Of a stretch of DNA of 64,000 nucleotides, positions 43,903 through 59,201 are shown piece after piece. The notes under the pieces were generated by a model that saw only the letters and a program-made list of their open reading frames with translations, was not told where the DNA came from and did not search any database. Each line of letters begins with the position of its first letter. The stretch's first letter is position 1. This DNA is from Diadema antillarum. Its lineage: Eukaryota. The position numbers were made by a program, and so were the translations under genes. The DNA lies in contig NW_027272134.1 in assembly GCF_040938485.1 (NCBI RefSeq), positions 1,178,001-1,242,000 on the forward strand. The letters are read 5' to 3'.

Positions 43903-44640
43903 CTACTCTGAGCTGTAAGGATTCAAAGTTTTTGGCTACAATTTTAGGGTTATCTGACGGGGAAAGTGATGGACGCATTCTCCCAAAAACCAACTTTCTT
44001 CCATTTACTCATGGCTTTTGGAGTAGTCTATGATATAATAATGGTAATGATTTTGTTAATGAAAGTGATAATATGATGAGGATGATGTTGATAGTGATTA
44101 AAATAATGCTAAAGCTAATTATATAGTTGATTATGATGATTCCATGATTGATGTAGACATTTTGTAGTAAAGATGACTCCAGGACTTGATGAAACAGAAT
44201 GATGTTGGCTCTACTTCAAAGTTACGGACTTTTAGCAGCACTCAGCGAGGTTTAAAATATTTTTCCATTATGCAGCATTTCACAGTTTGTAGATTATATT
44301 TAGTATATACTGTGTAAGCAGTTTTGCTAAATTTTTTCCTTTTTTTCTCTCCAAAAGTGAGGGATGGGTTAAAAATCTTGGGAGGTTGGAGAGTATATGT
44401 GTGGAATGCTAAAATTGAAATCATAGAAAGCAATGTGCAGTCATCATGGTATCCGGAGAATTATTTGATTTGATCAGATTAACCCCCCCCCCCCCCCTTA
44501 ATATTTTCTGTTTGAATGTAGTGAAGAGATGTAGGGTCATGATGACGACTAAAATCTGATGGATGTAGCCTATATATTTCTACCAGCAGCTGTCTGATCC
44601 CCCCACCCCCATGTAAGTTTAGGTCTGGGTTATGTTTGAT

Positions 44641-44672
44641 CAAGGAGCTTCAAACACATGGAGATACAACGC
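44641..44672 (+). repeat. Left terminal inverted repeat CAAGGAGCTTCAAACACATGGAGATACAACGC
   Basis: Exact reverse complement of 58818-58849. Confidence 0.97.
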
Positions 44673-44785
44673 TCACTTTCCTTTAGAAGTAAGCTGTGAT
44701 GCCGCCGTCGTAAAACAGTGGGTGGTTGACCCTTATCTAATCTACTGGAATGTCACTCTGACCGCAATTCGAAAGCCCCGCGGAA

Positions 44786-44873
44786 AAATACGTCATCGGA
44801 AGTCAACGCTCTCGCAATGCATTGTGGACAAATACGTCATCGGAAGTCAACGTTCTCGCAATGCATTGTGGAC
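44786..44873 (+). promoter_or_regulatory. Subterminal 44-bp direct repeat x2 upstream of the PHD gene, containing ACGTCA (CRE half-site) and CGGAAGT (ETS-type) motifs
   Basis: AAATACGTCATCGGAAGTCAACG(C/T)TCTCGCAATGCATTGTGGAC twice with 1 mismatch, in a CpG-rich segment about 140 bp upstream of the ATG at 45010. The regulatory role is inferred. Confidence 0.6.
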
Positions 44874-45009
44874 GCGAAGCGATATTCGGTGATGTTTAGC
44901 CATACAGCTCTATGGCGATACTGTACTGTAGCGTGTATTAGCTAGCTAACTCATCGCGCTCGTTAATTGCTTGACAAGCTTCCGTAATTCCGTGGCGGAC
45001 AAAACAAAA

Positions 45010-45262
45010 ATGACTTCGTCTTCACTGACACTGGATGATAGAGACGTGATATGTATTTGTTCCATCCCCAAAACATCTAATCTCATATCCTGTTCTAATG
45101 TTTCGTGTACAATCGGTATTTACCACTCCGAATGTGTTGGACTGCAGCTGCACGGGCACGGGAGTGCTGGAAAATCGGATTGGTTTTGCGAGTTATGCGA
45201 TGCCGATGAGACAGACGACGTATTGGAAGGGGATGTTGAACTTAATTCGGAAACTAAAAAAG
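45010..45262 (+). CDS. Exon 1 of accessory gene (PHD finger and acidic stretch)
   Basis: CIC-x10-C-x4-C-x5-H-x2-C-x15-WFCELC; ATG in aaaATG context; donor AAG|GTACCG. Confidence 0.85.
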
Positions 45263-47633
45263 GTACCGTTGAATTCATTGTTCTTACTGAGTGATATCAT
45301 TACAAAAAAAAAAAAAAAAAATTGATAGGTACAGTCAGTGTCAGCATATGCAGCTGCAGGAGGTGGTGGTCTGGATGATCGCTGAGCAAGTTTTTTTTTG
45401 AACACTGAAAGTTGGATCATTTGAGCTGTAGACTTTACAATACGAAAACCAAGGAGCTTCAAACACACTGTTTGAAGCTCCTTGAAATCCCTGTCTGCCA
45501 CAGATAATATTTTCTGATAATTGATAGTACTTCAGAGAGGTATTAAATAGTAGCCAGTTAATACTTGATTTATAATAGACCTACCACGTCACTAATATTA
45601 ATGATAATCATTTCCATTTGAAAAAAAAATAATAATAATGTGTCTCCAAAAGAAATAGTTACACTTACAATAATACAAATTAATGGTTACAGTAATCAAA
45701 TAACAGTCGTGATGCAATGCTGATTAAAAATAAAAATGATAAGTAATTTACCAATGATAAAAATAATTTAAGCGATAGTCATAAGGATACTGCAGTTACT
45801 GCTGCTGCTAACAAGAAATATGATGGGGGGGGGGGGTTGGTGTCGGGCTTGTATTCAGGGAAAATTTGATATCCGAGTATGTCATTGCAGAATCATTGCT
45901 ACAGTACATGGCATGAACAAGTCTTAAAATGAAAATCCCATAATTTTTATTGTCAATAATGATCTACCTACAGCGTACTAGTAGTGTATTTGACTACTAG
46001 TAATAGTATGTCGAAGTGGCTTTGCACCCTCAGCCTGATTTTGTTTAGGAGCTGACGGAGGGCTCTTGAGAAAAATTAATAAAATGACAAAAATTCTCTT
46101 TCCTTTTCTCTATAGTTATACTTGCTGCTTTGTGCTTGTATGTTTTATTTGCATGTATCAAAATATTAATAGGTCCAATAGGAATCAAGCTGATTACCTC
46201 TTCTTTAATCCTCATCTTCAGATGACCATATGGAACAATCATATGAACAGCATGAACCAGGATCTTCGTCTGATCAACAACCGAAACTGCCTAAGCAACA
46301 ACAGAAGGTGATTCCATGTAAGTACAAGTGTATACCCAAAATTGGGTCCAATTCTGGTCATTTAAGGAAGAGCAATTTGATGAATTTTAAAATCAAAAGG
46401 CATACATGTAGTTCTTAAATGTAACATTGAAAAAAAAATTGAGGAAAAAATAGAAATGACTGGTACTTCACAAATTTAGTTGGTGAATTTAAAAGTACAT
46501 GTATATGAGGTTTCATTCTTTTTTTCCCCCATTTCAATCTAATTTCTCTTTCATCAACAACGTAAACTATATATGTACATTTCTTAATGAAGAAAATTTT
46601 TAAAGCCTGTTGTCCTTTTTCTTTTCTAGTGCACGGCTCCAAGGTCGTTAAGAGTGTCATGGAAGCAGGGTACGACATCTATAAGGAAGCACTTGAAAGG
46701 GCACAAAAGGATGATCATTTAAAAAACTACCCTACAGGCCGAGAAGTCATTAGAGTTTGTGAACTTTTGTTAAAGTCCCCGACCGATGAGAGCAGGAAAT
46801 CAGCCCTTGGACTTGTTGAGAGCGTACATACTTGTGCATGTGCTGGTGATGCATTTCCTGTTGGACCAGCAGCCAACGAGAAAATTTGCAGTGCCTTTCA
46901 CCGCCTTCGAACGCAGACATCTCTACAACATACCTGGCAGACACTTCTTCTTCAGAGCAACATAACATCCTCACCCCAAACTTCACATCTTTCACTTCAG
47001 TATATACTGCGCCAACTTCTTCACATCATCACACACCGGAGACTCATTCAGCCCGATGAAATCCAGACTGATGACTCAGCAAATCTCACAGAGCATGATG
47101 AAAATGTCTTGAGATATGTGGCTGGCTACATCCCTTTCGCATTAAGTAAAAGATACACCAAGACAAACTCCAAATTCTACAGGACTTTACAATCTTGGAG
47201 GGGTTCAGATGAAGACATTGTTGCAGATACATTTCTTGAGTACACATGTACTTGGACGAATCTTGTTAATAGAGGGGGGCTTTTCCGTGTTAAGGACAAT
47301 GTTTACATGCTGTTCCGGGCCATGGAAATTCAAACAAAAAGAACACTTAATATGAATCTTGCTCAATCTCCTGACCTTGGAGGCTTGTTGACCAAAGCTT
47401 TACTGCAAAGTGAACATGTTCTACATTGTTGGACCTCCCTCATTGAAGATTTGACTGAAAGTGAAGCACAAACATTGCTGCTTACTGTTGTAAGATACTG
47501 GGTAAAGATCAGGGTTAATGCCTTTGTACGAGTGTTTCTAAATCTACGCAAAGAGGAACAAGCAAAGAAAAAAAGGAGTAAGAAAATAGCACGCAAAGGA
47601 GAAAAGAGTTTAAGGAAAACTCTTCAGAAGTAA
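45010..47633 (+). CDS. Transposon accessory gene: PHD finger + acidic linker + P-transposase C-terminal-like domain, 450 aa; exons 45010-45262, 46222-46317, 46630-47633
   Basis: Canonical GT-AG introns with matching phases (1 and 1); 253+96+1004=1353 nt with no internal stop. C4HC3 PHD in exon 1; YVAGY, RGGL and KIRV motifs in exon 3. Confidence 0.85.
45450..45484. repeat. 35-bp TIR-to-TIR hairpin (putative excision footprint)
   Basis: CAAGGAGCTTCAAACA-CAC-TGTTTGAAGCTCCTTG = first 16 nt of the TIR and its reverse complement; flanks are not duplicated. Confidence 0.85.
46222..46317 (+). CDS. Exon 2 of accessory gene (Q/E/S-rich linker)
   Basis: Acceptor ctcatcttcag, donor T|GTAAGT; phase-compatible with exons 1 and 3. 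Confidence 0.75.
46630..47633 (+). CDS. Exon 3 of accessory gene (P-transposase C-terminal-like domain)
   Basis: Acceptor ccttttcttttctag; long ORF with ENVLRYVAGY, WTNLVNRGGL, YWVKIRV and a basic tail. Confidence 0.88.
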
Positions 47634-52088: not shown

Positions 52089-52375
52089 TCATCGCTTTCT
52101 CTTTCTACTCTGCAAAGGAGTAGAATCCACAGCAGTTTTTCGTTTTTGTGACTTCACATTAGCTTTTGCTGAGACTGCAATGCTTGAACCTGCTACATGC
52201 AGTGGCAGAATGTTTGAGCCAAACTGATGAACATCAGGGTTGTCAAACCGTCCTCCAACTCCTCGCTGACGACTGAAGTACTCTTCCAAAGGATCTTGGC
52301 TGAATTTTTCTGAAAGAACAAACTCCACACCATCCTCCAAGAGAAGCTCCTTGGCAAGTTGAACAAATGAGCGCA
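52089..52375 (-). CDS. Transposase exon 6 (catalytic Glu, SQDPLE; basic C-terminal tail RKRKR)
   Basis: Acceptor ttaataccacag; phase 1 restores VRSFVQLAKELL. Confidence 0.9.
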
Positions 52376-55300
52376 CTGTGGTATTAACAAGACACACACA
52401 CAAAAAAAAAATGTGAAAACACTCTGAAAGAAATGTTTATGGCAAAATAAAAGGGAAGAAAGAGCATATGATCATGGATGTTGTATTGACTAAGAGTAAT
52501 AAACCTGTAAAAAAAAAAAAAAAAAAACACAAAGTACAAAATATCTTGATAAGTTCATGCAATGAGCTTCTTTTTTAAGTTCCTTGGTTCATGCATGAAA
52601 GATAATACAAATCAATATACAAACCATGAAAAATCTCCAGAATTTAAATAACCACGCGAATATTAAGTGCAGGTAGAGAAGAAATGGGAATAAAACAAAA
52701 CATGTGAGTTCTTTATTGCACCTAACATTAGAAAAATGCAATGTCTCTTATCCATACTTTTTCCTTTTCTTTTCATTTTTTTATGAAATAAGGAATAAAC
52801 AAGAAATAGGAAATCATGTTTAGAACGTACATGTATTATAGTACATTTGCATGCATGTGTGTGTGTGTGTGTGTGTGTGTGCGTGCGTGTGTGTGTTTGC
52901 ATTCAAATTTGTCTGTTCTTGAAGATAATGTTCTTATTTTGTTCTAAATTGAACATGGAATTTGTATCAATACTAGTAGTTAAAAGTAGTTCTGAGAATG
53001 TCTGCGCTAATGTGGCAATGTGCATGTGCTATGTCTATGGTGCAATATAGGTAGCCATCTCTGTCAACCTACCCTGAGACAAACACTCTCCCAGGCCCAT
53101 CCCACCTCCATTGAACAAAACCTACAGCCAGTCGGGCACGCACAAACAAGCTCCGCCCACTTGGCCTGTCACTAAAATATTAAAGCAGCGATTGGTTGAC
53201 CAAGGAGTTCTGGCTTGACATGGATAAAGTATGGATGTGCTGTGTGTATGGATAAAGTATATGGATCGATGTGCTGTGTGTATACATGTATACATGTGTA
53301 TGTATTCGACATGCGTGCAGAGCGGTGCATGCTTACCTGCAGCGGGCCAGGGACGGGGTTCTTCGACATGCCGATTTTTTTGTTCTCTAAATGTAATGAG
53401 AATGCCAGACAAATCTTCTTCGGCTCAAGTGATGTAAACTACGTGTATTATGTACAAAAGGGACTGAATGTTTTACTTCGACACAGCCGAAATTCGACTC
53501 TCGTACTTCGGCTTATCCAAATATTTCTTAGAGAAAACACATAGGGAAAAATCGGGACTTCTTATTTTGCTTCGAGTTAAGTGATTTTCGACTCACTCGA
53601 CGTCGACTTATCCGAGGTTTACTGTACGTTATAATCACCTGTTAATCTCAGGCCATCAAGAGTTGCTTTACTGAGACACAGCTTCTGGCGATCAGCTGCC
53701 TTAAGACCGGGGACAAGCATGCCTTCAGACTCCCACTCATCCAGTAAGCCAAGGAAGTCTTCCTCTAGCCACTAAAAGGAAATAAATTAGAAGGAAATCA
53801 GATTATTAGGAATTAACACAGTCTGAAGCTCCTTGATAATACTCATATTAAAAAAAAAAATAATAATTTATGCAAAAGCCTTTCCCCCTTATTTAAAAAA
53901 GGGGGGGGGGGTGCAGCAGAAATTTTTCTTGTAGCTTAATGTTGGCCTAATGGAACACTGAGGTCTAGTTTCATCTGCTGAGGTCAATTAAAATGTGTAC
54001 TTGCACATGTATACCAGACTCCCTTTTGTCTTGAAGGGTTAACAACAAATGTGTCTAAATCTCCCAATTTTAACTTCTTCATTGTTCATCTACAAGTACA
54101 TCACAACATACCACAGAGCTTAAAACTGTTTTAAGCTCCTTGAACATACCAACAATCTCCAGTCATCCACAGATTTGTAAGGGGCAAGAGCTGGATTTCG
54201 GGATTTGATGTGCTGGGAGATGTTCGACACATTCATGCAGTCAAAGAACTGGTTGAAATATTCTATGAATGTGATGGTGCTGGATGTCTCCAATGGTTTA
54301 CTGCTTTGCTGTTGTTGCATCTTCAGAGCACTAGCCATAGATGTGCTGAGAACCTGTAAATAGAAAAAAAAGTTCAGATACATTCATGAACATTCCACTA
54401 TTTCTACAGACCCTGTGTGAAACAATTGGTGTGGGGTGTATGTGTGCAGGTGTATGTGTTTTGATATCGATTATCTAAAGATAAGAGTCTTACATGTACT
54501 ATTAATGGTAGATTATTTGAACCAAGGAGCTTAATTGTAGATTATCTGAACCAAGGAGCTTAAAACAGACGACTACTGTTTGAACATAAATGCATGTTCT
54601 ATAATTGAATACTTTGGAAAAATAAAAAAGCACTCAAAATAAAGCTATGATTTCACATAAATAGGACAAAAACACAGAAATCAATGAAATTAGATTACAT
54701 GCACAATTTAAGTTATTATAAGTACACATATTTTTAAATGCTTCAAGAGAAAACTAATCCACATTAACAAGGAGCTTGTTTGAAACTCCTTGACATTTCT
54801 GAATTTTGCTATTAACCCATAGAGGTACATGGCTTTGCACGGGTATAAATCAATCAGCTTTTTTACTTGAAATCCAATTTTGATGAGATTTTCAGCATTA
54901 TGCTTTTTTTATTTTTTTATTTTTTTATTCAAATCAACTTTTTGCTGGGGTGGACTTCCCCTTTAAGAGAAACTGCAAAAGTGTCTCCTCTGTGGGTTAA
55001 TGGATGTAGTGACAACCTTGCTTTGCTGCTATATGATGTTTACAGCAATTACATAATATTCTTACCTGTGCAGCAAGGGAAACTCGCATGCGTGATGAAG
55101 GAGTCAGGTTAAGATGTTCTGCGGTGATTTTGTTGAGCATTCGCAGTCCTTGTGCTGTACCATCTGGATTGATGTGCCCAGTGTCCCAAGCGTTGACATC
55201 AAGGATATGTCTCCAGGAAATTGGAGCACCTCTAAGCTACAGAGAATAACAAGTAATATTTAGAATTACCATCAAATGATCTTACACAAGAAACATAATG

Positions 55301-58300
55301 CTACACTAACAGAAATTGTCAAAGGAAATGATTTAGCACTATAATTAAGGACTAATAAGAGGCTACTTGGTGAATTGAAGTCTGAAACATTTTTTTTTTA
55401 TAAAAAACAAACAAACATATATATATGAAAAAAAAACAAACATATATATATGATATACAAGAATTCTTAAATCTACATGAATATCAAAAGTAAGAAATGT
55501 AAGACCAAGAAGTACTTTAGAGACATTACCTACGTGTACGTGATAATCTGAATAACTTTTCTACTGACACAGCATCATTACTATTTTGTACTTAGAGGAT
55601 GAATCAATTCGATAATTCCAAAACTATTTACCATCATATTTCTGGTGTTGTTATGGCTGCCAGAGTTTTCGAAGTTGTTTCTTGTTGTTTTGATCAGGTG
55701 AGGGACATCAGAGATAAAATATATCTTGTGGTCAGGGTTGAAGGGGTTTATTGTGAAGTGCTCTGAACTGCACAATTTGTAGAATTTCCTGTTTGTGGTG
55801 GCCCCATCTGACACAAATGCACGAACATGGAATCCTGCAAAATGCAGTCGCTCCACCCCCTCCCAGATAATGTGGTACAACTGATCGGCTGTCATGGCAT
55901 CACATGGAAAAAAACCAACTGGAGTGTGAAGATTATGAAAGATCCCTCGGATCATGATGGTAAGTGCATGTGTTGCAATGTTCTGCGTAGTGTTGTCTTC
56001 TGCCTCTTTTCGATACTTCAAAAGTTCATTGTTAATGTCTCCAAGGTCTGTAAATCCGACCAGTTTACCTCTTGACGTGTAGACAAGGCCTGATTTCACC
56101 TTCATTTCATCAAAGACGACCGATACATTTTTCTGATGGGGTGGCAGAGACTCAATGTTTATGTCCTTCGCAATCTTGGAAAGGAAGTCTGAAGAGTATC
56201 CAGGGTTGATGTCAAAGCAGTGTGTGTAGTTGAAGAGTGTGTTTTTATGGGGAAGGTGGAGATACCCGGAAGACCGAAGAAGGTCATATGCAGCAGGGCT
56301 TTTGGAGTGAATTGCAATGCAGAGGCGGAGAATTGAAGGATGCCAACGCATCTGGCGGGGTGGCTTTGTGAAAAACTTCTGTTGTTCCTCCCACAGAAGC
56401 TTTGCAGGTGACCCTTCTGGGAAGTCGGCATTGTGGGCTTGAAAAATATCCTTGAATGACTTGCTCACTTTCTTATCGATGATTTCCCCTTCCTTTCGGA
56501 TCATCTTGTGCAAGGACTTGCGTAGCCGCACTAAGTTCTCCCCCATGGCCTTCCTTTCCTTACTCATTTTTTCCAAGCGATTACGCATCTCCGTTTTTGA
56601 CAAGTGAGCATGTGGCTTGAAGCTTGACGTACTCGCTGTTTCTTTCTCCTTCTTTAACCTTTTGCGAAGAATGCCAAGATCCGTCCTGTAGATGGTACAG
56701 GTACCGCACCGTCCAACATCACCTTTGAGGATGGGGCAACTGTTGTGTCTCAATGACACATTCAGAGAGTCATATTTACTCGGATGATGGTATACAGGAC
56801 GGTTCATAACATCTTCTGGGCTAATATCACCAAAGTCTTCATTGCCTGGGCAGACATGTGACTTCATGATTGCTTCTAAAAACTCTAGAATCTGCGATGG
56901 AGACAAATTGGGCGGAAAATCTTTGAGAATGTCAATTCCCGGATCTATTACCTTGCCATAGTGGCGAACCCTCCAACTTCCGTCACAATTAATGATGCAG
57001 CATTTCTCCGACATGCCTTCATCATCCAACTCGACAATGATCACCTTCCCCTCTCTCTGATTGAACACCATCTTTCCTTGGAGCACATCCTGCGCATTCA
57101 TCACTGCATCTAGAATGCCACCATCTTCCTCTTCATGCGAAACACAATATTTGCAGTCCGGTGCATGAGGCTCAAAATCAGGAACAACAATGCTGATACT
57201 TGCAGTTTGCCTCTTTCGTTGCTTCTCACGCCATCTCGATAACTTCTTCGAGCAAAGCCCACAAACCGAAGGAGGATGAATATCATCAATGTCGAGAGAA
57301 ACATCGATGTCAAGAGCCCTTTTGATAACAGCAGACCATGTTGACTTTGCTTGGTGTCGCTTATTTGGCAATGTGATACCATCGCTACCACACAATCTAC
57401 AGATGTCCTGAAGTTTTTCCTTGTGTCTGTCCTTGTCGTCTAAAAAAACAATAATAACAATAACAACAACGATAATAATAACAGTAATAATAATTTTAAA
57501 AAAATAATTCTATAATAATTCGGTGATACTTAATCACATCAGTTTTCTAAAGCTCTATGAAGCTGAATATAATGTACACAACAAAATCACATATATTTGT
57601 TTTAAAAAAATCTTTTATGTGTCATGTTGTTTAATAGTATTTTATAAATTCACATGATAAAGTAAACCTAATATAATAAGAAAAATAACTGAATGAAATG
57701 AACATATAAAATTTCACATTTACACTTTGGTCACTATTCAATTATTTTTCAATAATCTAAAGCAAAACAAGCAACAAAATACTGGTTCAAGTGAAACATG
57801 ATGTAGCTCACAGGATATTGACTGAAATTATGCATGGGATCAGCGCACGGGATAGCCATTAAATTTACAAAGTTAGAGCGTCGATTCGGGTAAACATGCA
57901 GTCATTTGTACATCCACAAGAAGATTAAGATCGAGAACCTTGTCGGACTACAGTACGCCTGCTTGTACTTTGTTTTTAATGTTCTGAATGGAAGCTATGA
58001 ACATGTAAATTCCAGACCATGCGCCACATAGGCAGGCTGGAGGATTCAACTACCGATGTCATCTCAGTGACACTTTTGTACAGTCCCATATATAAGACTT
58101 TGAGTGATAAAAAAAGCTACTTTTAAATAGACGCTACGTAAACATCACACCAAAATGACTCACAAATATCACTTCTTCAACGATTATTTTCAATTGCAAC
58201 AACATAAAACATGAAAAAAATGTATGACCTACGGATAATTTTCCATAACTCGAGGAATACGAAACACAAGAGTGGAAAAAAAAGCTGAAAATCTCGGCCA

Positions 58301-58502
58301 ACAAGCATTCGAAACTCGGCTTTCCTGAAGTTGGCCGCTGCTGGCCGCAGTGCAGATGAAAGCGTTTGTAAAGACGAGACTTCGATCTTCAAATTCATAT
58401 ATTGCGCATCATGTGGATATTTGCGGAATTTTACTTATCATAATCATAACTTAGCTAATTAGATATTCATAAAAACACATGATAACATCATAACTCACCC
58501 AT
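52089..58502 (-). CDS. P-superfamily (THAP9-like core) DDE transposase with RAG1-N-terminal-like zinc domain, 868 aa; exons 58502-58499, 57439-55632, 55236-55066, 54353-54150, 53771-53639, 52375-52089
   Basis: All junctions GT-AG and phase-consistent (1,0,0,0,1); 2607 nt with no internal stop. P-type motifs RWHP..SPAAY..LR, VFDEMK, SDGA, SDVPHLIK, HLNL..MRVSLAAQVLS, FDCMN, FSQDPLEEYF..GG..DNP. Confidence 0.9.
52560..52586. repeat. Excision footprint with perfect 7-bp TSD GTTCATG
   Basis: GTTCATG-[CAATGAGCTTC TTTTTT AAGTTCCTTG]-GTTCATG. Confidence 0.8.
53639..53771 (-). CDS. Transposase exon 5
   Basis: Acceptor atttccttttag, donor G|GTGATT; WLEEDFLGLLDEWE...LSKATLDGLRLT. Confidence 0.85.
54112..54142. 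repeat. Excision footprint whose perfect TSD (AACATAC) is the splice donor of transposase exon 4
   Basis: AACATAC-[CACAGAGCTTAAAAC T GTTTTAAGCTCCTTG]-AACATAC; the reverse complement GTATGTT is the intron start at 54149. Confidence 0.85.
54150..54353 (-). CDS. Transposase exon 4
   Basis: Acceptor ttttctatttacag, donor G|GTATGT; VLS...FIEYFNQFFDCMN. Confidence 0.88.
54768..54792. repeat. Excision footprint with partly decayed TSD
   Basis: ACATTAA-[CAAGGAGCT TGTTTGAAACTCCTTG]-ACATTTC. Confidence 0.7.
55066..55236 (-). CDS. Transposase exon 3 (insertion/GTP-binding domain region)
   Basis: Acceptor ttattctctgtag, donor CAG|GTAAGA; ISWRHI...KITAEHLNLTPSSRMRVSLAAQ. Confidence 0.88.
55632..57439 (-). 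CDS. Transposase exon 2 (RAG1-like zinc domain, second Cys/His cluster, coiled coil, HTH-like region, first two catalytic Asp)
   Basis: Acceptor ttgtttttttag, donor ATG|GTAAAT; 1808-nt open frame. Confidence 0.92.
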
Positions 58503-58572
58503 TTTTTGTCCGATTTTCGTGATTTTTTTTGGAGAACGAAGAGAAAAGCCAGCAGAGTCGATTGAACATAAA

Positions 58573-58584
58573 TGCGCATGCGCA
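58573..58584. promoter_or_regulatory. Perfect NRF1-type palindrome TGCGCATGCGCA upstream of the transposase ATG
   Basis: Consensus match about 70 bp upstream of the ATG at 58502 in a CpG-rich subterminal region; function inferred. Confidence 0.55.
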
Positions 58585-58817
58585 TGGGATACCCCTACAC
58601 ACTGCGCAAGCATCGACATGCTACAGCTCCCCAGCCCACATCATGCTAACACGGTCGAGTGAGCAAACACTACAGCACCGAGCGGCATCATACCTCTCGG
58701 ATAAAGGAAGGGGAAATGGGACCCAGGGGACCAAGGGGACCGTGTTATCAGTGAAATATCTTTACTTTCTCCTCGCGCACTAATCCGCTGGCATGCTGTG
58801 CATTTTTTCCTGCTCCG

Positions 58818-58849
58818 GCGTTGTATCTCCATGTGTTTGAAGCTCCTTG
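58818..58849 (-). repeat. Right terminal inverted repeat (32 bp)
   Basis: GCGTTGTATCTCCATGTGTTTGAAGCTCCTTG followed by TSD GTTTGAT. Confidence 0.97.
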
Positions 58850-59201
58850 GTTTGATGTGATTGATGGAGAGTGTGCTGGTAATCTGTCAAGGAGGGAACA
58901 CAAATCCTCACAGATGGGATCAGATCCAGTTTGACTTGATTGATGTGCACATCCAGGGGTTTGGGAGATTTTGTTCTTATTGGCCATATCTTCCATCACC
59001 CTGTCAGAGTTAGTATGCCTCCCTCCACCTATCCAGTCTCAGATCAGTTTGCAGAGAGGGGTCATTGAACACTTTCAAGCTCCATTAGTCATCACTTCTG
59101 CACCTTATTTTTTTTTTCCAGCTCATCTCTGAGAAGCGAAGGTATGAATACAGATGCCCACTATTTTCGTTGAATACCTGTGATGTTGGGATGATCTTTA
59201 A

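Follow-up and report, generated by a model that had tools for sequence, protein, structure and literature searches.

Between positions 57144 and 57425 of the window (the 64,000-nucleotide stretch of Diadema antillarum contig NW_027272134.1, whose numbering is used throughout), the minus strand encodes a two-zinc domain of the RAG1 N-terminal type at the head of a P-superfamily transposase. Taken as a whole, the evidence makes it very probable that this segment is the N-terminal zinc domain (NZD) of an intact, recently mobile P transposase, that it lies in the slot otherwise held by a THAP domain, that the architecture belongs to one clade, that the domain has a binding or import role, and that such a module has been swapped at least once. 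The protein, an 868-aa product labelled P0001, is found in the public protein collection as 'uncharacterized protein [Diadema antillarum]' with 100% identity to the translation of the window.

The minus-strand translation contains DDKDRHKEKLQDICRLCGSDG...IDDIHPPSVCGLCSKKLSRWREKQRKRQ...FEPHAPDCKYCVSHEEE, and the first ~106 residues of the open reading frame (ORF) are MDDKDRHKEKLQDICRLCG...IHPPSVCGLCSKKLSRWREKQRKRQ...FEPHAPDCKYCVSHEEE. In the register given by tblastn, residue n lies at 57443-3(n-1), with H7 at 57425-57423 and C100 at 57146-57144, and the ligands are spaced H-x7-CRLCG-x31-D-x4-H-x4-C-x2-C, then H93-x3-C97-x2-C100, which is the pattern of RAG1 and of type I Chapa domains. The coordinates and spacing given in the first-pass annotation, made from the sequence alone, are exact by this translation and register. 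The whole domain (residues 1-106) occupies 57126-57443 on the minus strand, as delimited by its Pfam match, a predicted model and structural matches, and the segment from H7 to C100 (57144-57425) holds all eight predicted zinc ligands, whose columns vary little or not at all across 26 family members. The two predicted, interdigitated zinc sites are ZFa (C15, C18, C61, C64) and ZFb (H7, H93, C97, C100). Within the domain, again on the minus strand, 57387-57425 covers H7 (57423-57425, the first of the ZFb ligands), helix H1 and the CRLCG motif, whose C15 and C18 form the first half of ZFa, aligned to H102 and FCRICG of mouse RAG1; ZFa is completed at 57252-57263 by C61-x2-C64, which follows the invariant P57 and is also aligned to RAG1; the basic helix H4 and its tail (GLCSKKLSRWREKQRKRQ) lie at 57207-57260, as placed by model helix 62-76 and the net charge of segment 62-85; and H93-x3-C97-x2-C100, the three C-terminal ZFb ligands in the type I pattern, lie at 57144-57167, aligned to mouse H206, C210 and C213.

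As judged from sequence profiles and a predicted fold, this domain is truly homologous to the NZD, or Chapa domain, of RAG1 and RAG1-like (RAG1L) proteins, in the invertebrate form that lacks helix H2. The Pfam family RAG1_imp_bd (PF12560, cut-off 23.3 bits) is matched by the whole exon (E 2e-8, 34.6 bits), by the domain alone (E 3.9e-12, 46.8 bits) and by 24 of the 26 family members. Among PDB sequences, phmmer retrieves mouse RAG1 (residues 139-215) and the isolated mouse RAG1 NZD chain 21wb_A with E 9e-8, and the profile of the 26-member family alignment (A1) matches the latter with E 7.6e-15. The Cys/His pattern is therefore far beyond chance, and a fortuitous arrangement of these residues is rejected by the Pfam score above cut-off and the phmmer match to the mouse domain. 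Invariant positions in A1 are C15, R16, C18, P57, C61, C64, C97 and C100, with H7 nearly so. HMMER alignments place H7 on mouse RAG1 H102 and H93/C97/C100 on H206/C210/C213, the residues identified as the ZFb ligands of the mouse NZD by nuclear magnetic resonance (bioRxiv 10.64898/2026.01.24.700457). Mouse RAG1 reads VHQARLRHFCRICG / ... / WHPHTPSCDIC in the same alignment, in agreement with the human RAG1 motifs given in the first-pass annotation.

The likeness extends to invertebrate RAG1L: nine NZDs were aligned from proteins carrying a core of the RAG1 type (phmmer matches each of the nine to that of P0154, and Pfam RAG1 is confirmed for P0154 and P0216), and hhalign of the P-linked NZD against these nine gives a probability of 99.9 and E 4.8e-31 over 100 collinear columns. 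All eight ligands are retained in 51/66 P-linked domains vs 10/10 RAG1L-linked ones. ZFa is complete in 64/66 P-linked domains, with Cys at C61 in 66/66 and at C64 in 64/66. R16 and P57 are invariant in both groups, as are C15 and C18 in the P-linked domains, and the median net charge of segment 62-85, after C64, is +6 in P-linked and +7 in RAG1L-linked domains. The comparison with RAG1 N-terminal profiles by HMMER and hhalign thus gives significant matches to Pfam, to 21wb_A and to RAG1L.

AlphaFold2, run on alignment A1, predicts the fold with a mean pLDDT (predicted local distance difference test) of 90.1 and helices at residues 3-12, 33-44 and 62-76, which correspond to H1, H3 and H4; the H2 of jawed vertebrates is absent. 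In a search of 550,129 Swiss-Prot models, the best 8 matches are all RAG1 (residues ~98-219, template-modelling score by query 0.60-0.70) and span the full 104 residues; ZAD proteins follow. The AFDB fold clusters that rank first comprise a 'RAG1 importin-binding domain-containing protein', entries for RAG1 and the ProtoRAG RAG1L of amphioxus. Among solved structures, searched with Foldseek and with VIA-align (wide), only ZADs are matched, over residues 13-80, 21WB being absent from those sets. The RAG1 NZD itself is described as having no solved homologue and a ZAD-like ZFa (bioRxiv 10.64898/2026.01.24.700457). Sequence, profile and predicted fold thus all uphold the homology to the RAG1 N-terminal zinc domain that had been proposed for this segment.

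The catalytic core that follows is that of another superfamily. An uninterrupted ORF runs from 55581 to 57446 on the minus strand, and tblastn of P0001 recovers five coding blocks (57443-55629, 55236-55063, 54356-54150, 53771-53622 and 52379-52092). Exon 1 (55629-57443, minus strand, as are all exons), defined by the ORF, tblastn, Pfam and the P element structure 6p5a, begins at a good acceptor (tttttttag|AC) and encodes the NZD, a conserved middle region, a coiled coil, a helix-turn-helix (HTH) and the N-terminal half of the RNase H domain with D445 (56109-56111) and D546 (55806-55808). Exon 2 (55063-55236, residues ~605-662) is recovered by tblastn at 100% identity; exon 3 (54150-54356, residues ~661-729; tblastn) encodes part of the GTP-binding insertion domain (Pfam TNP-like_GBD, E 4.4e-9); exon 4 (53622-53771, residues ~730-779) is placed by tblastn; and the last exon (52089-52379, residues 773-868 and the stop codon; tblastn and Pfam) carries the C-terminal part of the RNase H domain with the catalytic E804 (52284-52286), which falls on E531 of the P element. 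No splice joints are seen in three public runs, which hold an unspliced second copy.

Pfam finds TNP-like_RNaseH_N (PF21787, E 8.1e-26) and TNP-like_GBD (PF21788), with TNP-like_RNaseH_C (PF21789) just under its cut-off (22.8 vs 24 bits), and the structure of the Drosophila P transposase (6p5a) is matched over residues 496-828 with E 3.9e-23. D445, D546 and E804 align with D230, D303 and E531 of the P element and are invariant in 15 relatives; by sequence, the RNase H fold, which a GTP-binding insertion divides and which carries this triad, is a P-superfamily core. When the profile of 15 full-length NZD-bearing proteins was compared with that of 19 THAP-type P transposases (three with THAP retained), hhalign aligned 712 columns (probability 100, E 1e-127), residues 124-861 of P0001 corresponding to 144-879 of P0099, and the N-terminal modules were the sole unmatched parts. 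The core thus aligns with P transposases and, by Pfam, 6p5a and hhalign, is P-type, as had been claimed, and not Chapaev/CMC or Transib. No RAG1 core (PF12940) is matched by Pfam in the Diadema protein, nor any RING family at E<=1, which bears out the statement that no RING finger follows the domain; genuine RAG1L proteins from the same homologue search do match these. THAP gives no Pfam match in the protein, and the THAP domains of two relatives, searched by tblastn against the 64-kb window, find nothing better than E 0.47. THAP is widespread in the P superfamily, and the description of the NZD as its replacement rests on that occurrence: the absence of THAP and the presence of the NZD in its slot are borne out by Pfam, tblastn and hhalign, while replacement presumes an ancestral THAP and the core tree is unrooted. 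By its core, the protein is a member of the P superfamily and not of its THAP-bearing (THAP9-like) group.

The gene lies in a 14,209-bp element bounded by perfect 32-bp terminal inverted repeats (TIRs) and a 7-bp target-site duplication (TSD). The left TIR (44641-44672, plus strand) is 100% complementary over its 32 nt to the right TIR (58818-58849, minus strand), zero such matches being expected by chance, and the two copies of the TSD, GTTTGAT, are read directly at 44634-44640 and 58850-58856. Contigs from the three public runs (X1-X3) hold a second copy, ~98.6% identical, collinear and unspliced from 56024 to exactly 58849, the end of the right TIR, beyond which the flank is unrelated. This second copy has a 1-base deletion at 56567 (a frameshift), a 3-base insertion after 57223 and a cut at 56024, and resembles a defective sister copy. 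Because of the TIRs, the TSD and the near-identical copy with another flank, the element is a real, multi-copy, recently mobile 14.2-kb P-superfamily transposon with an intact transposase.

To place this architecture among its relatives, the NZD profile was searched against 1.84 billion cluster representatives, and 2171 proteins were found at E<=0.001 (560 at E<=1e-10). Among the best 150 cluster representatives together with earlier matches, the NZD is linked to P-type sequence in 71 cases, to RAG1 cores in 9 and to other long proteins in 8, a ratio biased by a search profile built from P-linked domains. The NZD-P family is present in all five echinoderm classes (Diadema, Strongylocentrotus, Lytechinus, Acanthaster, Patiria, Anneissia, Antedon, Amphiura, Holothuria and Apostichopus), in three Branchiostoma taxa and in the hydrozoans Clytia, Hydractinia and Hydra. 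In an unrooted tree of 78 P cores, all 23 NZD-bearing proteins fall in one clade with an SH-aLRT (Shimodaira-Hasegawa-like approximate likelihood ratio test) value of 100, THAP-bearing cores form a separate clade (SH-aLRT 99), and P transposases of Mytilus, Ptychodera and Frankliniella with neither zinc domain are placed between the two. The NZD-on-P architecture is thus one clade across echinoderms, cephalochordates and hydrozoans. A truncated Mytilus protein inside this clade suggests that molluscs probably have the family as well.

The domain itself is less informative. Neither of two domain trees (a quick one of 91 rows and a careful one of 31) resolved P-linked from RAG1L-linked NZDs; monophyly of the P-linked NZDs is not rejected (p-AU, the approximately unbiased test, 0.12), and a single clade of RAG1L-linked NZDs is marginally rejected (p-AU 0.02), a result made unsafe by long branches. 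No donor or direction of transfer can be named from these trees. The proposal in the first-pass annotation that the domain is a mobile module exchanged among DDE superfamilies is supported by its presence on three kinds of core, while the domain tree names neither donor nor recipient. Of the separate phylogenies suggested there, that of the core gave a clear answer (one NZD-P clade) and that of the domain did not. Each testable part of that interpretation (domain, core, THAP slot, literature) held, and we regard it as supported overall.

THAP is the site-specific DNA-binding head in P elements. The NZD would most likely be a zinc-dependent module for nucleic-acid binding and/or nuclear import and assembly, helping to bring the transposase to its own ends and standing outside catalysis; its place in the THAP slot and its conserved, strongly basic helix H4 suggest such a role. 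Both zinc sites of RAG1 are reported to be needed for RAG cleavage in cells (Hong et al., bioRxiv 10.64898/2026.01.24.700457), which, along with the basic H4, makes DNA binding, import or assembly the most likely function. That this role is DNA-end binding in particular is about as likely as not, or slightly less. The N-terminal module would have been swapped between transposase superfamilies at least once.

Several points weigh against this reading. About a fifth of the 66 P-linked domains are without a full ZFb, which suggests that some lineages can do without the second zinc site, and the structural match to RAG1 is one of predicted model to predicted model. The ATG is supplied by a short upstream exon in the public gene model only, and a further coding exon upstream is a formal possibility, although tblastn shows no THAP anywhere in the window. 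As to function, the HTH (aligned to the P element) and/or the conserved Cys-rich middle region could carry end recognition, the NZD being then regulatory or concerned with import only, and what the NZD does within RAG1 is described as undefined (bioRxiv 10.64898/2026.01.24.700457).

A different identity for the domain would be that of an ordinary ZAD (zf-AD), the single-zinc dimerisation domain of animal zinc-finger proteins, its likeness to RAG1 being secondary. Pfam zf-AD is indeed matched by 21/26 members at E<0.01, the ZAD 7po9 matches the family profile with E 6.8e-5 (the best ZAD), and ZADs are the sole matches among solved structures, with Z 4-5.7 over residues 13-80. We nevertheless hold this to be very improbable and reject it in its plain form, as zf-AD (PF07776) scores 21.3-24.5 bits for P0001, under its cut-off of 28 (vs 34.6-46.8 bits for RAG1_imp_bd, with its cut-off of 23.3), and a second set of ligands is present: a ZAD spans ZFa only, and the conserved flanking H7 and H93-C97-C100 align with the ZFb ligands of RAG1. 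The family profile favours the RAG1 NZD over ZAD by ten orders of magnitude, and the best matches of the predicted structure are to RAG1 across all 104 residues. Since Hong et al. (bioRxiv 10.64898/2026.01.24.700457) derive ZFa from a ZAD-like ancestor, the ZAD likeness is a deeper relationship and not an alternative to the RAG1-type NZD. Doubts of another kind concern the joining of this NZD to a P core, which might be an artefact of a gene model or an assembly in which a piece of RAG1L or Chapaev was fused to a P transposase next to it. The start codon does lie in an unverified upstream exon, and several database relatives are clearly chimeric models (one, for instance, with an indoleamine dioxygenase domain). 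The chance of this is nonetheless negligible, and a gene-model chimera is rejected: the NZD, middle region, HTH and first two catalytic Asp stand within one unbroken 1.8-kb frame of the raw window, in a single exon, the same domain order recurs in 23 or more full-length proteins, which come from over 15 species of three phyla, and the public runs supply an independent copy, slightly diverged, that is collinear over 56024-58849.

If the fusion is real, it could still be that of a domesticated host gene, in which the NZD was added for a host function, and not a mobile-element transposase. The 90% cluster of P0001 has one member, on one contig, the gene has introns, and the annotations of many genomes treat its relatives as ordinary genes. 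Domestication is nevertheless improbable given the perfect TIRs with their TSD, the frameshifted second copy that stops at the same TIR base before a different flank, the five divergent paralogous lineages within the Diadema genome and the intact DDE triad. A somewhat larger, still small, chance attaches to the possibility that the Aplysia N-RAG-TP, described by Panchin and Moroz (2008), was already a member of the NZD-P family, as molluscs probably have the family (the truncated Mytilus protein above) and a 2017 preprint mentions that 'many other families' emerge in RAG1L searches. Against it, Kapitonov and Koonin (2015, PMC4411706) state that no further transposable element is known to encode the Chapa domain and place Aplysia with the species of the Chapaev group, the Aplysia element is treated under Chapaev3 in later papers, and Hong et al. 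(2026, bioRxiv 10.64898/2026.01.24.700457), who used a 'Chapaev-3Aca' Chapa domain, describe Chapaev as 'the only lineage' in which a similar N-terminus is consistently kept. Neither P-family search brought up an Aplysia protein, and full-text searches for the domain together with P or THAP9 found nothing in the accessible literature. The accessible literature thus confines the domain to RAG1/RAG1L and Chapaev, in line with the annotator's remark that it was not known on a P-type core, and the NZD-P clade is apparently undescribed.

Other features of the element were noted. No subterminal repeats common to both of its ends were found. Two tandem 44-nt repeats, 95% identical and each with the palindrome CAATGCATTG, lie at 44782-44869, ~140 bp inside the left end; with no mirror at the right end, they are a possible subterminal protein-binding array. 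A terminus-like internal sequence is found at 45446-45470 (CAAGGAGCTTCAAACAC with 2 mismatches at 45450-45470), and a 42-nt imperfect inverted pair (52550-52591 / 54547-54588) containing AACCAAGGAGCTT brackets exons 3 and 4. A highly repeated short element sits in an intron at 53500-53626, where the public runs reach a word depth in the thousands, vs 15-72 for the transposase. The opposite strand of the transposon carries a second gene, with ORFs at 44971-45291 (+) and 46587-47633 (+); in the former, Pfam PHD picks out a weak PHD-like finger at 16.5 bits, under its cut-off of 24, and the latter, of 348 aa, has no Pfam match.

Among the relatives, several (P0251, P0265, P0266, P0271, P0291) are named 'THAP9' in public records. 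The Branchiostoma 'THAP9' proteins have an NZD and no THAP, the name having been transferred from the core alone. The full-length P transposases of Mytilus, Ptychodera and Frankliniella (P0283, P0291, P0281, P0317) have long acidic or low-complexity N-termini. NZDs also occur outside recognisable transposase cores (P0121, P0122, P0123-P0126, P0169, P0166, P0205), some proteins having two or three in tandem, one combining NZDs with five CXXC fingers and three RINGs, and one, probably a chimeric model, being fused to an indoleamine dioxygenase domain and a RING. For the long proteins with neither P nor RAG1 core (P0123-P0126, P0203), examined as candidate Chapaev transposases, Pfam found nothing and the protein atlas only weak low-complexity look-alikes.

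The origin of the non-core N-terminus of RAG1 is an old question, the answer to which, as of January 2026, was that the zinc fold is specific to RAG1/RAG1L and otherwise found only in Chapaev (bioRxiv 10.64898/2026.01.24.700457). The same two-zinc domain is here the standard N-terminus in a third, unrelated DDE superfamily, in a coherent clade extending from cnidarians to cephalochordates, which makes it look like a portable transposase module and not an invention of the RAG lineage. With the NZD-P clade, the RAG1 N-terminus gains one more candidate donor (or sister), and its possible sources become more numerous. It also offers a tractable system for NZD function, P-type transposition being well studied (excision assays, cryo-EM) and the NZD occupying the slot of THAP, a domain of known job. 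We think it unlikely, though worth stating, that the NZD is a general portable module of end recognition or synapsis with P-type elements as its main reservoir, that the N-terminus of RAG1L and RAG1 came from a P-type element or a common pool and not only from Chapaev, and that the Diadema element, whose second gene has a weak PHD-like finger, is a P-superfamily parallel to RAG1(NZD)-RAG2(PHD).

Compared with known systems, the Diadema domain shares with the NZD of jawed-vertebrate (mouse) RAG1 the eight ligand positions, the CRxCG and hP motifs, helices H1, H3 and H4 and the basic character of H4, but the mouse domain has H2, its CRICG and the following helix lying ~19 residues further apart. 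In RAG1 the NZD is followed by RING/ZDD and a RAG1/Transib core, whereas the Diadema protein is without RING/ZDD and has a P-type core. The NZD of invertebrate RAG1L is collinear with it over 100 columns without large gaps, has the same length, ligands and invariant R16/P57 and a similar basic charge, and is likewise the N-terminus of a transposase in a TIR-bounded element; the core, however, is of another DDE superfamily. ZFa (residues 13-80) superposes on crystal structures of ZADs (zf-AD, PF07776) with Z 4-5.7 and a root-mean-square deviation of 2.3-2.9 A, but a ZAD binds one zinc and dimerises, whereas a second site is predicted for the Diadema domain from its N- and C-terminal extensions.

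Chapaev and Chapaev3 (CMC superfamily), with Aplysia N-RAG-TP apparently among them, offer the other instance of an N-terminal two-zinc Chapa domain on a transposase that is not RAG1; the Diadema core is P-type by its match to P transposases. With canonical P transposases (the Drosophila P element 6P5A, THAP9 and THAP-bearing cnidarian and Ciona relatives) it shares its whole architecture beyond residue ~124, GTP-binding insertion and DDE triad included, and with canonical P elements TIRs of ~31-32 bp, a TSD of 7-8 bp and an intron-containing gene. The two differ at the N-terminus, where the site-specific THAP finger of canonical P has the NZD in its place in Diadema, and their cores form separate clades.

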